A stretch of 64,000 bases of DNA from Pocillopora damicornis (Eukaryota): positions 744,001-808,000 of the forward strand of contig NW_020847747.1 in the NCBI RefSeq assembly GCF_003704095.1. The letters run 5' to 3'. Below are positions 31,013 to 37,000 of the stretch, one piece after another. The position numbers and the translations under genes were made by a program. Each line of letters begins with the position of its first letter. Within the stretch, counting starts at the first letter, position 1. The notes below the pieces were generated by a model. The model was given only the letters and a program-made list of their open reading frames with translations, made no database searches and was not told the DNA's origin.

Positions 31013-34000
31013 TCATGCGCACCATGAAATATCGTGTAGACACATGGCTTTAAACCACTGAAACATCAGCTGATTAGACGAACTCAGGCTTAATGTCGGC
31101 CCATCCTTCTTCACTTCACCGATTTGAGTCTGTTGACAACGACATACAGACAATTACTAATGAGACATAGAAACATGACACAAAAAATAGCAAAAAATAA
31201 ACATAAGAAGGACCTACAAAAGAAAGCTCACCATTACAGGAGGGTATACTCTGCGGAAGCCTCCTCTGTGAGTATGCTCTAAGTAAGCAGCCTTGATAAA
31301 GTCACGTTCATTTTCGCGCAGGCAGGGAAAACACAGGCGGCAATGCTAAAGACATGGAGACAGCAAAGAACACAACGAAAATTAACAAACAATGACCCTG
31401 ATGTACAGCATAGATACCACAGGCCACCCACCTCATTGTAACATGACTTGGAGCATTCACTGCTTGCACATCTTTCGTACAATACTTGAATGTCATGATC
31501 GCTAACAAGCATGTCTTTCTCTGATGGAGAGCTAATGCACATACACGAAAAAAATAAAAAAATAAGCGTTGTTACGGAGATTTGCTGAGCTACATTGGAA
31601 GGAATTGCGTGAAAAATTGTCTCCCCGACCTGTACTTCAAACTGTGGTCCAGTTTTGACGCCACTCCCACTAAGCCAAGAAGGTTGAATACAACCTGCAG
31701 GTGACAAGAATGGAGATAAAAACAGTGAGTCATTCAGTTTCGTTCTACAATTTGCGTGGACTAGGGAACAGAGATAGTGTGCTTTAATTCTCTTGACAAG
31801 AAAACATCCTATTAGCAGTATTTGACCTCACCTGTTCGTACATCAGTTTGTTATCATTGTGCGCAGCTGAAGACAAATTTGGAGACATGTTTACCTTTAA
31901 AGACAACAAAAAAATAGTGATTTGATGCGATGAGTTATTTATATGTCTCTCAGATGGGGCCAGCAGCTGAAGCAACAAACAATAAACATCGTGTACCTCC
32001 ATAAGCCAAACTTTTAAGTCAGCATCCAGGATAAAATCAAAGCGGACCATCTCAAAGAAGTTCCTATAATTTGTGGAAAAAAATTAACATGATAAAACAT
32101 TTTATGTTGAATGGAGGAAAAGGTGTTTGGAAAGCTTCAGTTCTCGATATAACGTGGGTGCACTCAATACATCTAATACCTTGTGGATTTGAAGTGTGAT
32201 CCTGCAGATATGAGATCTGTTTCCTTTCTCAGGTAAACCTGAGATCAAATACATCATCAATTTTAACATCAAACATTAAAGTCAATTTGTTGGTTTGGAT
32301 AATATTACATGTGAATTAACAAAACCCTTTGCTTCTTTAAAATAATGTTTGATCTAAAATTTCAAGAAAAAAGTTCATATCATAGATGAGTAATGTGTTC
32401 CAGCCAATCATAGCTTCTCAACAACAGAAATCTTACCTCTGCAATAGCCCTGTAAATATCGCTCCATATCTTATCAACATCTTGACCTGTAAAAAGTAAA
32501 TACAGATCACTGTAAGAAGCATTGCAACCGATGACCTGAGTAATGGCAACTGATGTTTTAGTTCAAATTAATTCAATTGTACATTAACTTTATTTCTTTA
32601 CATACAGCAGCTGAAAGGGAGAGTTATAAAACAGACCTCCCAATCAGCAATTTCTGAATCCTTTTTTATCAAATGTTTTGGTGTCAGACAATCTAAAAAC
32701 TTTTCTCCATACCTTGTTTTTTAAGATGTGCATTAAGAAGCAGTTTGCGGCTGTATTTTCCTTTATGCCACCACTCCCTCAGAGAAGGCAGCTGAATGTG
32801 AAATAAGTAAGACAACCATCAGAGTTCTGAACAAACATACTCAAAATGAAGCAACAAGAAAAAATCTGAATGTGTTTATCAAATAGGAATCATAAGACTG
32901 AAAAAGGTCTTTAGATTGTTGATGACAACAGGTGAAACAGGACAAAGCTGAGAAAGCAAAATATCACTGTAGAAACAGTACATTCACAACAGGAAAGGGT
33001 TATAGCAGTTTAACTAGAAGTTTTTGGGAATTGTGGTGGAATAAACCAGGCATAAAACTGGAAGGGCCATCTACCTGTCTTAGGCTTTTGTATGACTCTT
33101 CATGGGGAGGATGCATAACAGAACTAACTCAGGCAACCCCTCAATTACCTCCCAAGGCTGAGTGTATGAATCTCCCACAACATATTTATCTTCATCATTT
33201 GAGTCAAATGGGTAATAGTCTGTCTCACAAAACCTGCACAAGAGTTGTTGAAAATAAGAAAATAAAAAAAGTGGATGCTACAAAACTTACTCAAGACCAC
33301 TCTTTAAAAATTAATGCACAGCAGCTTGGGCACACTATCTAATAAAAATTAGCAATGTGCTCAGAAATGGATATTAATAAGACTTTTGTCCTTGAATTGA
33401 CCTCTGCTTTGCCATTTATGATAGTCTAGTAGAACCCCTCAGCACTTTTACTTTTTAAGTGATCTCCACTTTTCTTCAGTTTTAATTGGGTCCAGGACAT
33501 GTAGATTGTTACACAGTGATGGAGAAGTTTTCATTAAAAAATATTGAGATAATGACATTTAATGATCAGGTGCACAAAAAAGGAACTTAATTAAATGTGC
33601 ACCGTCATAAAACTGTATTAAATGAGTGACTCATAAAATAACCTGATAAGAACCTCCTGGTCATAGACATAAACTCTGAGAGGATCAATGGAAGTTAAAA
33701 CAGTGTAAACACCAATGTCAAACTTGCGTTTATCAATAAGATATGGATTGGCAATGTACTCCTGAACAAAGTTCTCATCAGACCCCTTATGAAGGTCAAT
33801 TTCTACAAAAAAAAAAGTATACAAAATTAATGGAAAATATGCTTATAATAACTCCAAGCCACTTGTTGAATAACAAGAGGCAGAACCCAACAGACCAAGT
33901 GTGAGCCTTCAAGAAAAATATTACAACTGCAAGTTTGTGTAATATTTGTACCATTTGGAGACTTGATGTGTATTCCTCTGTGGTTATTACTCTTCTCCAC

Positions 34001-37000
34001 CCAAAGTTTCTTAGGATGGTTCTTAACCTGAATACAATAAGTAAGAAGACACAAGTTAAAAAACCTCCATGTTTTAATCACACCACATACTATAACGTTG
34101 ATGCTGATTTCTGCTAGCTCAAATAATTTGTTAATATTTAATTATGTTTATTTGTTTGTTGGTAGGCTGTTCAATGTCATTTACTGGCCATATTCTACTT
34201 GAACTGATACCTCCTCTAAAAACTTGTCTGTATCCTTTGGTATCACAAATGCTGGAGGAATAAATGGAAAATGGTTCACTGCCAGGCTAACTTTGTTTGT
34301 AATATATCCAGAACCTGGAAAATGATTAATCTGAAAACAAAAGCAAAACAAGTTTGTCTCAAAATGACACAATTACCTTTCCAATACGAGTAATTATCCA
34401 TTAAAAAATGCATATGCATAAATTCTGGTTAAATATTTTCCCCAGGTTTTATTTCCATTGTTTTTTAATTTTCACAGATACACCTAATGAACATCAAACA
34501 CTTGAGTCATAAAACAGTAACAAGTAATTATTGTAAAGACTTCTTATATTAGATTAACATTTTGCAAAGCAAGGATGTTCCGAAATAAAATTAATAAACC
34601 TTTTGATGTGGCTCTAGGGTTAGCAGCATATCTTTAAGTTCTCCACCAAATGGATAGTCATGGGCCCACATCACGTCAAACAAGCGGCTTTTTGCCTCAG
34701 TTCTGGTATAACCAATTCTGCTGAACACAGCCATCACATGTTTCAAGTAACCTGACTTGAGCTGATAGATAAAAGAAGTTACTTCTAATTATCCACATAT
34801 CTGATATGACTTTATTCTTGTTTAATAAAAAAAATATATTTGCTTCTTATTGAAATAAAGCACATGAAAAATTTTTATTTTGTAAATAAATGTAAATGTC
34901 AATAGGCCCATTGCAGTTAGCAGTCACATGACACATGGAAAACATCTAATGCACTGTTAATGTGTGGTCATACAAAACCCAGGTGCATGTGGTTAAAAGT
35001 AATTCAAGTATCCAATGAAAGAATTATTTTTTAATATTATTCACCATATATTTATGCTTATGATCTCCATCGATATTCCCAACATTTTTGCAACGGTAAG
35101 CCCTTGATAACTGTACAAAACTCTTGTGAAAAATGAATAAATCACAAAATAACATATTTAATGGTAGTTAACTTATGCATAACTTGAACAGAATTCAAAC
35201 ATTTAGCTGATATATTTAACCAATAACTGTTTAACTCATTTAAAAATAACAAGTATCCTTACATTTCTGGCATTCATCCAAACAACAGGTCTTCTAGAGC
35301 TTCCAAACTCAGGATCACCCACAGTCTGCCCAGTAGTTATGCTATGCAACTGATAGATATTGACTAAAATCAACAGTACACCAAAGCACAGGCATCCCAA
35401 CATGAGCTGCACCATACGATGTGAAATTTGAACTCCATGGTGAGGGTGTGGGTAATATTTGGAATTATCAGATGCATACTGAAAATAATTACAAATAAAA
35501 AGTTTGCATGAGATATCAGTGACAAGCAAAGACAAAGACTTTTGGGTTTGTCTTGCAGTTTGATTTGAAAAAAAAAACACCACATGTAGATTAAATTTCA
35601 CATAACCAAAAAAAATATGTTGACTTGGATAACCTACAATCTCTTTACAGCCTAAATTGAAGTTCTAAGAGTATAACAAAATGTGTGGGCTCTTCTCAAT
35701 TACAGACATGACATTCATAAATTTGACATGTTCTGGGTCTTTGTTAAAATTGCTCCACACAAGGAGCTGGTAACTTGGCATTTAGACTACAATGTGGGAG
35801 ATCCATGAGGTGCTCGAAAAGCAGGGATTACAGACTTAACCCAAGAGTTTGACCTTGCATGAGTGGTTTTCTGGCATCAAATTTGAATTGAAATTAGGGC
35901 TAACCAATGAGATTCCTTAACTTAATTACCAGTCAATCTCAATGCCATTGAAACACATATTAGGTGATCTTGGGAAATGAAATCATTTCAAATTTCCAGG
36001 TGCACAATAAACAGGAAATCTGTAAAATGTTTCAGTAAAGATGACTCTCACAAACAAAACAAAACCATTGCAAACAATTTTTGCTGTGTGTGCACATAAT
36101 TTATCATCAGAGATAACATTCATGCAGTCTTTCTCTTTTTCAGATAAATGAATGGCTGGAAGGCCAAGTTTGTTGAGTTTGCTTCTTGTCTAATGATGAT
36201 CCTAATAAATGGCGAAATTACAAGGACATGCACAAAAAATTTTTGCAAATCAAAACACCTTGTAGATAATGCTCTATCCAAAGGCAGTTGTCAACAGATT
36301 TCCGGCCAATAACCCAGTATATTTTTTTATTGTGAGCGCAATGCAGAAATCAAACTCTTGGGCTTAGTCTGTAGTTGTGACAATTCCAGGTGGACATCAC
36401 TCACGGAGCTCCCATGATATGTAAGTCCCTCCATGAACTTCCTTCTGTGTGCTAAAATTAATTTTTTTTACTGATTACTGCCACTTAGGTTATGGACTGC
36501 ACTGAAAAAGAAGGACTGCTCATAGTCTACTTGGATTAAGGATATTTTGTTAATTAACACTCCTAGCTCTTAGAATCTCATTATTTCCGTTTTTTTCATT
36601 TAGTATAAAGCACTACTTTTTCATATAACTTAAAAAGTGAAAAAAAACAGGTTATGGTGGTCTCAAAAGATTACAGTAGAAGAAGGAGGCTGACATCATT
36701 AAAAAAAGAAATACTCATATGATGATGAACATATATGTGGAGACTCAACAAGTAATTTTCTTGATATAAACAAATTATCTTGTTTCTCAAATACCGTTAG
36801 TGTAATGTTAATCTGGAATAACAGCAGCATTTTCTAATATTTGTATGTCTAGTGTGTCCATACTCAAAACTTTAAAATTCTAGATTATGCACTTTTGTTT
36901 GTCAACAAAGTTTGTTATGGAAAATATCCTGTTTCATTTTCTTTTCATTTTAAAGCAGGCTGGAAGATTACATTTAAGGATAAGGGAAACTGAAATCAAA

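Follow-up and report, generated by a model that had tools for sequence, protein, structure and literature searches.

The 64,000-nucleotide stretch of the Pocillopora damicornis genome analysed here (contig NW_020847747.1, positions 744,001 to 808,000; the window, with positions counted from its first letter) carries on its minus strand a gene of 16 exons, 38140-31013, that encodes a protein of 524 amino acids with a TTL domain of the adenosine triphosphate (ATP)-grasp fold. The gene is a TTLL15 orthologue and an ordinary, already annotated member of its family, and the locus as such is no novelty. The apparent novelty lies in how the family is read: a conserved signal anchor, an eight-cysteine module in place of the microtubule-binding domain and three replacements at TTLL6 positions (Gly for R219, Arg for a Gly and Tyr for K377) are together difficult to reconcile with the name 'tubulin polyglutamylase'. 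An earlier note on this DNA had proposed a TTL-type ligase built like a Golgi enzyme, and the motifs it quoted (WVEK, QEYI, KFDIG, RFDF, E-V-N, the Cys-rich C-terminus and the helix MVQLMLGCLCFGVLLILVNIYQL) are all present on the minus strand.

Four runs, each from a different study (X2, X3, X15 and X1, the last presumed to be RNA), supplied RNA contigs, which were placed on window positions 30700-36699. The 15 exons from 35478 to 31013 have GT-AG introns throughout and keep an open frame of 1470 bases, counted from the methionine of the hydrophobic helix (35415) to the TGA at 31013, and all 14 junctions among them were found in RNA contigs of all four runs. The junction of the helix exon to the first catalytic exon (34761/35263) is one of these, so the helix exon belongs to the transcript, a point on which the earlier note had let its proposal depend. 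Past 35480, the contigs of all four runs continue with 210-255 letters that do not adjoin this position in the genome. Their placement in the window rests on the opening 30 letters, which are identical to window 38101-38130 (none of 100 shuffles matched) and indicate a 15th junction and an upstream coding exon. The 3' border of this exon reads ...TTCAAG/gtgaga at 38099, its first in-frame ATG is at 38140, and an in-frame TAA lies upstream at 38287-38285 (by eye). The protein begins with MWPWKSSNRQPDFK followed by 21 amino acids, which together form a basic tail of 35 residues ahead of the helix. The extent of 31013-35478 given by the earlier note was therefore right for 15 exons and missed the first coding exon, 38140-38099; likewise, its layout of tail, helix, stem and catalytic domain is transcribed and stands, with an anchor in 109 of 120 orthologues, while the tail has 35 residues and not a few.

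The product of the window is equal to P0154, the NCBI protein 'probable tubulin polyglutamylase ttll-15' of Pocillopora verrucosa. The 16 exon translations, checked singly, are contiguous and in order in P0154, with only five junction-spanning residues outside the pieces, and the five split codons (E206, R259, G314, R350 and S415) match it by eye. Full-length analyses were made with this database protein of 524 residues and not with a joined exon set. On the 3' side, the RNA contigs take the untranslated region to at least 30700, the edge of the examined stretch. Beside the main joint 32791/33149, a minor alternative, 32791/33075, was present in three of the four runs; this form is probably non-productive because of an in-frame TAA past the normal donor 33149 (by eye). 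The features of the gene are the following.

38099..38140, minus strand: coding exon 1, MWPWKSSNRQPDFK, residues 1-14, from the first in-frame ATG; placed by the RNA loose ends and equal to P0154 1-14
35263..35478, minus strand: coding exon 2, residues 15-86, with the remaining basic tail, the hydrophobic helix and the stem
35347..35415, minus strand: predicted signal-anchor helix, residues 36-58, MVQLMLGCLCFGVLLILVNIYQL
35347-35370, minus strand: distal end of the helix, residues 51-58, with its conserved N-[IV]-Y-[EQ]-L
34600..34761, minus strand: coding exon 3, residues 87-140, N-domain of the TTL fold
34211..34330, minus strand: coding exon 4, residues 141-180, with NHFPG and K153 (TTLL6 K125)
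33952..34027, minus strand: coding exon 5, residues 181-205 and base 1 of codon 206, with WVEK, the ATP-binding K192 (TTLL6 K174) and the shortened loop NNHRG
33643..33802, minus strand: coding exon 6, residues 207-258 flanked by bases 2-3 of codon 206 and bases 1-2 of codon 259, with QEYI and KFDIG
33711..33713, minus strand: codon GGT of G236, which stands in the place of the essential R219 of TTLL6 (R202 of TTL)
33149..33233, minus strand: coding exon 7, last base of codon 259 (R259, TTLL6 R241) and residues 260-287, with the invariant C261
32713..32791, minus strand: coding exon 8, residues 288-313 and base 1 of codon 314, with K303, a possible TTLL6 K283 equivalent (loop alignment ambiguous)
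32437..32486, minus strand: coding exon 9, last two bases of codon 314 and residues 315-330
32180..32238, minus strand: coding exon 10, residues 331-349 and first two bases of codon 350
31997..32063, minus strand: coding exon 11, last base of codon 350 and residues 351-372, with R357-F-D359 and E372
32042..32044, minus strand: codon CGC of R357, the invariant Arg where TTLL6/7 have Gly (GFD), a candidate replacement of the catalytic Arg
31832..31894, minus strand: coding exon 12, residues 373-393, with the Mg ligand N374, with M375, and with Y391 in the place of TTLL6 K377 (codon 31838-31840)
31630..31694, minus strand: coding exon 13, residues 394-414 and first two bases of codon 415, last core helix
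31432..31531, minus strand: coding exon 14, last base of codon 415 and residues 416-448, with C436, C441 and C445
31232..31345, minus strand: coding exon 15, residues 449-486, with C450, C453, C456 and an E471-H472...R480...P483 stretch common with TTLL7
31013..31129, minus strand: coding exon 16, residues 487-524 and TGA, with W511, C516 and C523

Pfam places residues 136-399 of P0154 in the TTL family (PF03133) at 195.1 bits, where the curated cut-off is 20.1, and single exons match as well: the KFDIG exon with E 1.1e-17 (64.6 bits) and the tenth exon of the 35478-31013 set with E 1.5e-5. The KFDIG exon, fifth of that set, was used alone as query against 1.84 billion representatives and gave 1917 proteins at E <= 0.001, many of them 480-560 residues long with the motif near residue 200-260. 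The orthologue set consists of the 120 best matches listed to the octocoral member P0074. These span cnidarians, Trichoplax, molluscs, annelids, nemerteans, brachiopods, priapulids, arthropods, echinoderms, hemichordates, amphioxus and a sawshark, and cluster look-ups add lampreys, the sponge Sycon, the nematodes Ditylenchus and Mesorhabditis and the green alga Mesostigma viride. The TTLL15 group shares KFDIG, RFD and a C-terminus with eight cysteines. Where the sources name the 120 best matches, the name is mostly ttll-15 or TTLL15, and otherwise TTLL4-, 5-, 6- or 7-like. The public names conflict in function too, with 'probable tubulin polyglutamylase ttll-15' at NCBI and 'tubulin monoglycylase TTLL15' at JGI/IMG beside the TTLL4-, 5-, 6- or 7-like labels. 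No assay was found behind any of the public TTLL15 names, and homology is the sole basis of the tubulin-modifier label.

The Mesostigma protein (P0138, from EukProt) has the whole TTLL15 layout, that is, a hydrophobic helix, K-W-D-I-G, a cysteine cluster and a C-terminal C...WC. When it was used as query, only three other proteins were found, one of them from an insect, and no further algal relative; P0138 could be real, a gene transfer or contamination. In the coral's own genome, a high-identity match was found at this locus alone, save a two-exon fragment on another contig (G000:C1276:53352-53669, plus strand). P0154 residues 179-235 are matched by its two exon-like pieces with 81-90% identity, and the fragment may be a pseudogene, a haplotig or an incomplete second copy. 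Three distant TTL loci in the same genome have 30-44% identity.

The AlphaFold2 model, made with an alignment of 84 sequences (A1), has a mean predicted local distance difference test score (pLDDT) of 89.1 and a predicted template modelling score of 0.84. It consists of a helix at residues 34-65, a stem at 65-72 with pLDDT below 50 and a compact domain from residue 79, and the C-terminal part is confident, with blocks at 92-97 and a dip to 70 at residues 491-500. Foldseek ranks TTLL6 (E 7e-23), TTLL7, TTLL11 and TTL in this order. The structural alignment to TTLL6 gives a Z of 34.6 and a root-mean-square deviation (rmsd) of 4.1 over 367 residues, model 75-500 on chain 57-460; Z is 30.7 for TTLL7 (rmsd 2.3, 301 residues), 29.9 for TTLL11 and about 28 for TTL. 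None of the structural matches covers model residues 501-524. In sequence, TTLL6 and TTLL7 are matched with E 8.3e-29, and with a profile 5.2e-50. A Pfam search of P0154, P0138, P0081 and P0082 found no significant domain besides TTL, the cysteine module being without a named domain, and ESM Atlas features for residues 414-524 returned only clusters of TTL fragments at no more than 0.86, below the trust level of the tool.

A stretch was counted as an anchor when a 19-residue window before the TTL domain had a mean Kyte-Doolittle hydropathy of at least 1.6. The helix of P0154 reaches 2.44 and is the sole stretch at or above 1.6 (residues 32-62), the best value elsewhere being 1.26. An N-terminal hydrophobic stretch precedes the TTL domain in 109 of the 120 orthologues. 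Nine of the 11 that lack it are shorter than 482 residues and likely truncated models, one of them beginning inside the helix, and the remaining two, P0209 (516 residues) and P0231 (498 residues), are of full size. In the 109 anchor-bearing orthologues, the tail has a median of 28 residues and the uncharged run a median of 23. The 15 residues before this run have a mean net charge of +2.94 and the 15 after it one of -0.31; the N-terminal flank is the more positive in 98 of the 109 and the less positive in 7, and 4 have equal charges. By the positive-inside (charge-difference) rule, which is established for signal anchors, such flanks predict a cytosolic N-terminus and a luminal catalytic domain. 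N-[IV]-Y-[EQ]-L occupies the distal end of the helix (in 109 aligned sequences N54 in 88, Y56 in 76, E or Q57 in 95 and L58 in 85), a stronger conservation than a plain anchor would require.

Among nine canonical (KFDxR) TTL proteins, seven have no N-terminal hydrophobic stretch. The other two, P0014 (884 residues) and P0139 (531 residues), have a signal-peptide-like hydrophobic start, and the aligned catalytic domain of P0139 has no cysteine; there may be further secreted TTL-like proteins outside TTLL15.

The active site can be read against that of TTLL6, as described in sections of the TTLL6 study (bioRxiv 10.1101/2020.06.07.139295). According to these, K125, K174 and N264 coordinate the nucleotide, D346 (at its first mention written N346) and E359 bind magnesium, and R219 and R241, equal to R202 and R222 of TTL, hold the transferred gamma-phosphate and are both essential, mutation of R219 abolishing activity. 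The same sections assign the donor glutamate's gamma-carboxylate to K283 and K377, reported to be invariant in all TTLL glutamylases, with activity falling to background when K377 is mutated, and the reading of the acceptor to Q180 and H362 (bioRxiv 10.1101/2020.06.07.139295). The TTLL6 numbers used here are the chain numbering of the PDB entry plus 50, on which the single-sequence and profile alignments agree, and the counts are over 109 aligned sequences.

The ligands of ATP and magnesium are kept in TTLL15: K192 (K174 of TTLL6) in 108 of 109, and D359 (D346), E372 (E359) and N374 (N361) in all 109. K153 (K125) and R259 (R241) are invariant in the 84 sequences of A1. As these ligands are intact, we take the protein to be probably an active ATP-dependent ligase. 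At the position of R219 stands G236, which is glycine in 109 of 109, and the glycine of the TTLL6/7 'GFD' is R357, arginine in 109 of 109 and two residues before the magnesium-binding D359. KFDIG thus removes an arginine that is essential in TTLL6 and TTL, and the R of RFDF is an invariant arginine specific to the family; both points had escaped the earlier note, as had the identity of the family as TTLL15. The position of K377 is Y391, tyrosine in 103 and phenylalanine in 6 sequences, a pairing that is the same in single-sequence and profile alignments and is followed by a helix that keeps its hydrophobic register. H362 is replaced by M375, methionine in 109 of 109. The position of K283 is uncertain within about three residues, and the nearby K303 is lysine in 84 and arginine in 10 of 109. 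The phosphate-binding loop between beta5 and beta6 is three residues shorter, K-SNNHRG versus K-PDSGCQGRG in TTLL6.

We propose from the aligned residues that the phosphate-holding arginine has moved to R357 and not vanished. The spacing R357-x-D359...E372-x-N374 would correspond to that of R255-x-D257...E270-x-N272 in the D-Ala-D-Ala ligase of E. coli, of which the sole trace was a non-significant Pfam match to Dala_Dala_lig_C (E 0.19, residues 354-381).

In 109 aligned orthologues of 480-570 residues, cysteine is conserved to at least 99% at nine positions: C261, C436, C441, C445, C450, C453, C456, C516 and C523. All eight C-terminal ones are present in 163 of 171 C-termini. Among the eight exceptions, three (P0029, P0165 and P0064) are cut short or alternatively spliced at the end, and P0019 has an unrelated C-terminal fusion. 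The tick pair P0089/P0277 has kept four of the six cluster cysteines and both terminal ones, and P0071 has six cluster cysteines and has lost both terminal ones, as its sequence shows, a pattern that P0280 repeats in the alignment. Such losses in twos, two independent events only, would fit disulfide pairs better than four-ligand metal sites. Position 478 is cysteine in 59 of 109 and phenylalanine in the coral, and a covariation check of C478 found no covarying cysteine column. The catalytic domain is poor in cysteine (0.47% in 149 family members, with a median of one, the invariant C261, per about 274 residues).

The microtubule-binding domain of TTLL6, residues 392-459 according to the same sections (bioRxiv 10.1101/2020.06.07.139295), corresponds in the structural alignment to model residues of about 405-500. 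Over residues 405-500 the net charge varies from -7 to +6 around a median of 0 and is +5 or higher in just two of 109 sequences; the matching stretch of TTLL7 has about +10 by a hand count. In TTLL15 a neutral module with eight cysteines stands in place of the cationic microtubule-binding domain (cMTBD). Such a domain after the core is a mark of the autonomous glutamylases TTLL4, 5, 6, 7 and 11. TTLL9-type enzymes are also without a cMTBD, and a missing cMTBD alone therefore does not exclude a protein from the tubulin glutamylases.

We read TTLL15 as a type II, lumen-facing ATP-grasp amino-acid ligase with an acceptor other than tubulin and a donor that is probably not glutamate, a reading whose chances of being right and of being wrong we hold to be about equal. 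The basic tail of 35 residues would lie in the cytosol and the single signal-anchor helix would cross the membrane, so that the short flexible stem would present the complete TTL ATP-grasp domain and the eight-cysteine module in the secretory lumen or, once transported or shed, at the cell surface. The enzyme would act as a Mg-ATP-dependent ligase, in which a carboxylate is phosphorylated to an acyl-phosphate and an amine is then joined. R357 would take over the phosphate-holding role of the arginine replaced by G236, the aromatic Y/F391 would replace the second lysine for the donor glutamate, as in TTL, and a neutral, probably disulfide-bonded module would stand in place of the microtubule-binding domain. 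In view of these three changes, the substrate is most likely not tubulin and the added group probably not glutamate. The gene model, its transcription, the family, the fold and the conservation of these features are results of the analysis, and the topology, disulfides, activity and substrate are inferred from them. More tentatively, and with the doubts outweighing our confidence, TTLL15 may be the founding ATP-grasp amino-acid ligase of the secretory pathway, ancient in animals (sponge to lamprey and shark), which would attach an amino acid other than glutamate, possibly an aromatic one, to a carboxylate of membrane or secreted proteins, or of acidic glycans, by means of an arginine at the D-Ala-D-Ala-ligase position.

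Several points weigh against a luminal ligase, and most of them favour a membrane-tethered glutamylase or glycylase that faces the cytosol and modifies tubulin or another cytosolic protein, with the helix as an anchor on an organelle or the plasma membrane and the cysteine cluster binding zinc. The nearest relatives by sequence and by fold (the E values and the Z of 34.6 above) are bona fide tubulin glutamylases, and the source names 'probable tubulin polyglutamylase ttll-15' and 'tubulin monoglycylase TTLL15' point the same way. The spacing C-x4-C-x3-C-x4-C-x2-C-x2-C could form a metal site, and in the cytosol the eight cysteines could coordinate a pair of zinc ions rather than join up as four disulfides; with C261, the invariant cysteines in the proposed luminal part are nine, an odd number. 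No conserved N-glycan sequon was found outside the catalytic NMSPNLS motif (none elsewhere in the coral protein, a median of three per protein), which counts mildly, as N-glycan sites are common in type II secretory-pathway enzymes and not obligatory. Hydropathy and charge were scored with simple custom scripts and not with a trained topology predictor. The low cysteine content of the catalytic domain fits an oxidising compartment, the control being a small and uneven one of nine mixed canonical TTL proteins (pooled 1.5%, range 0-2.97%). Nevertheless, we find the cytosolic enzyme unlikely, since 98 of 109 orthologues have flank charges that oppose it, no cationic microtubule-binding domain is present, TTLL6 K377 and R219 are both replaced, and sporadic cysteines are rare in the catalytic domain while those of the C-terminus are lost in twos. 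The GT335 staining kept in the C. elegans ttll-15 deletion, which is indirect genetics, also speaks against it.

The remaining point against an active ligase is G236, which could mean an inactive enzyme, as mutation of R219 abolishes TTLL6 activity. TTLL15 would in that case be a pseudoenzyme, a membrane-anchored scaffold or receptor that binds ATP and does not ligate, as would suit the loss of the essential R219 / R202 arginine in 109 of 109 and the shortened phosphate-binding loop. This we regard as very improbable, because the remaining ligands of ATP, magnesium and phosphate (D359, E372, N374, K192, K153 and R259) are kept across phyla and a new invariant arginine, R357, stands two residues before the magnesium-binding aspartate. 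A true glutamylase in the lumen, adding glutamate to secreted proteins or glycans, is also improbable, if a little less so. It would agree with descent from glutamylase-type TTLLs with an extended C-terminal TTL region, as E471-H472...R480...P483 aligns with TTLL7, and with K303 as a possible K283 match; but the K377 equivalent, a lysine reported as invariant in glutamylases and needed for TTLL6 activity above background, is Tyr or Phe in 109 of 109, and the H362 equivalent is Met in all. The luminal TTL-type ligase of the earlier note is thus favoured by layout and topology rules (98 of 109), and the 'glutamylation-type' activity it attached to it is not. A link to cnidarian poly-glutamate chemistry, also raised there, found no support, and a poly-gamma-glutamate or cnidarian-specific role was rejected, as the family is pan-animal, from sponge and placozoan to lamprey and shark, and the glutamate-binding K377 is replaced.

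TTLL enzymes have been studied as writers of the 'tubulin code', and TTLL15 has been counted with the glutamylases in C. elegans genetics. If TTLL15 is luminal and unable to bind glutamate in the manner of its relatives, the multi-mutant worms made to lack 'all glutamylases' carry a deletion of no relevance, the annotation is wrong in hundreds of animal genomes ('tubulin polyglutamylase ttll-15' being a misnomer), and ATP-dependent ligation of amino acids on secreted material would become testable. If the secretory-pathway ligase is true, a class of extracellular post-translational amino-acid additions has gone unseen. For corals nothing special follows, as theirs is one ordinary, single-copy gene from a family found across animals.

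The closest known system is mouse TTLL6 (PDB 6VZQ-6VZW, 8U3Z), which has the ATP-grasp fold in common with the coral protein at 26-27% identity. Both have the ATP and magnesium ligands K125, K174, D346, E359 and N361 and the phosphate/donor arginine R241. In contrast, TTLL6 is without a membrane helix, has R219, the GFD Gly, K377 and H362 where the coral protein has Gly, Arg, Tyr and Met, and carries the cationic microtubule-binding domain 392-459 where TTLL15 has the neutral eight-cysteine module. With TTLL7 (PDB 4YLR), the alignment continues past the core to the ...EH.NR...RR.YPP stretch, but TTLL7 is strongly basic between the core and the EH motif and TTLL15 is Cys-rich and neutral there. 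TTL has a Tyr at the K377 position like the coral Y391, whereas it keeps R202 (the Arg of KFDIR), has a Glu at the K283 position, is cytosolic and is without the cysteine module.

The nematode members P0081 (Ditylenchus) and P0011 (Mesorhabditis) have the same helix, KFDIG, RFDF and cysteine pattern, and C. elegans TTLL-15 belongs to the same family by source names, with no difference in kind. In the sections of Chawla et al. on this protein, it has no murine orthologue and is unresolved in the tree, no cMTBD was found in it, and the ttll-15 deletion has GT335 staining like the wild type (PMC5051658). In another study, ttll-9 and ttll-15 deletions added to a triple mutant did not reduce the axonal polyE signal (PMC11216746). 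A further one counts ttll-15 among five 'TTLL glutamylases' and reports ccpp-1 suppression for the ttll-5 and ttll-11 deletions (PMC7592914). In the text of Chawla 2016, the words transmembrane, membrane, signal peptide and cysteine are absent. The literature searched mentions ttll-15 in C. elegans papers only, and the searches gave no paper on a membrane-anchored or luminal TTLL or on an ATP-grasp amino-acid ligase of such layout, with subscription journals, feature tables and supplements outside their scope; the anchor may well have been flagged automatically in protein databases already.

In layout, the likeness would be to secretory-pathway kinases, FAM20C for example, and to the type II Golgi transferases, which have a short cytosolic tail, a signal anchor, a stem and a luminal catalytic domain, and which include users of ATP in the lumen. 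TTLL15 would be like these enzymes in its architecture, and its fold and chemistry are unrelated to theirs.

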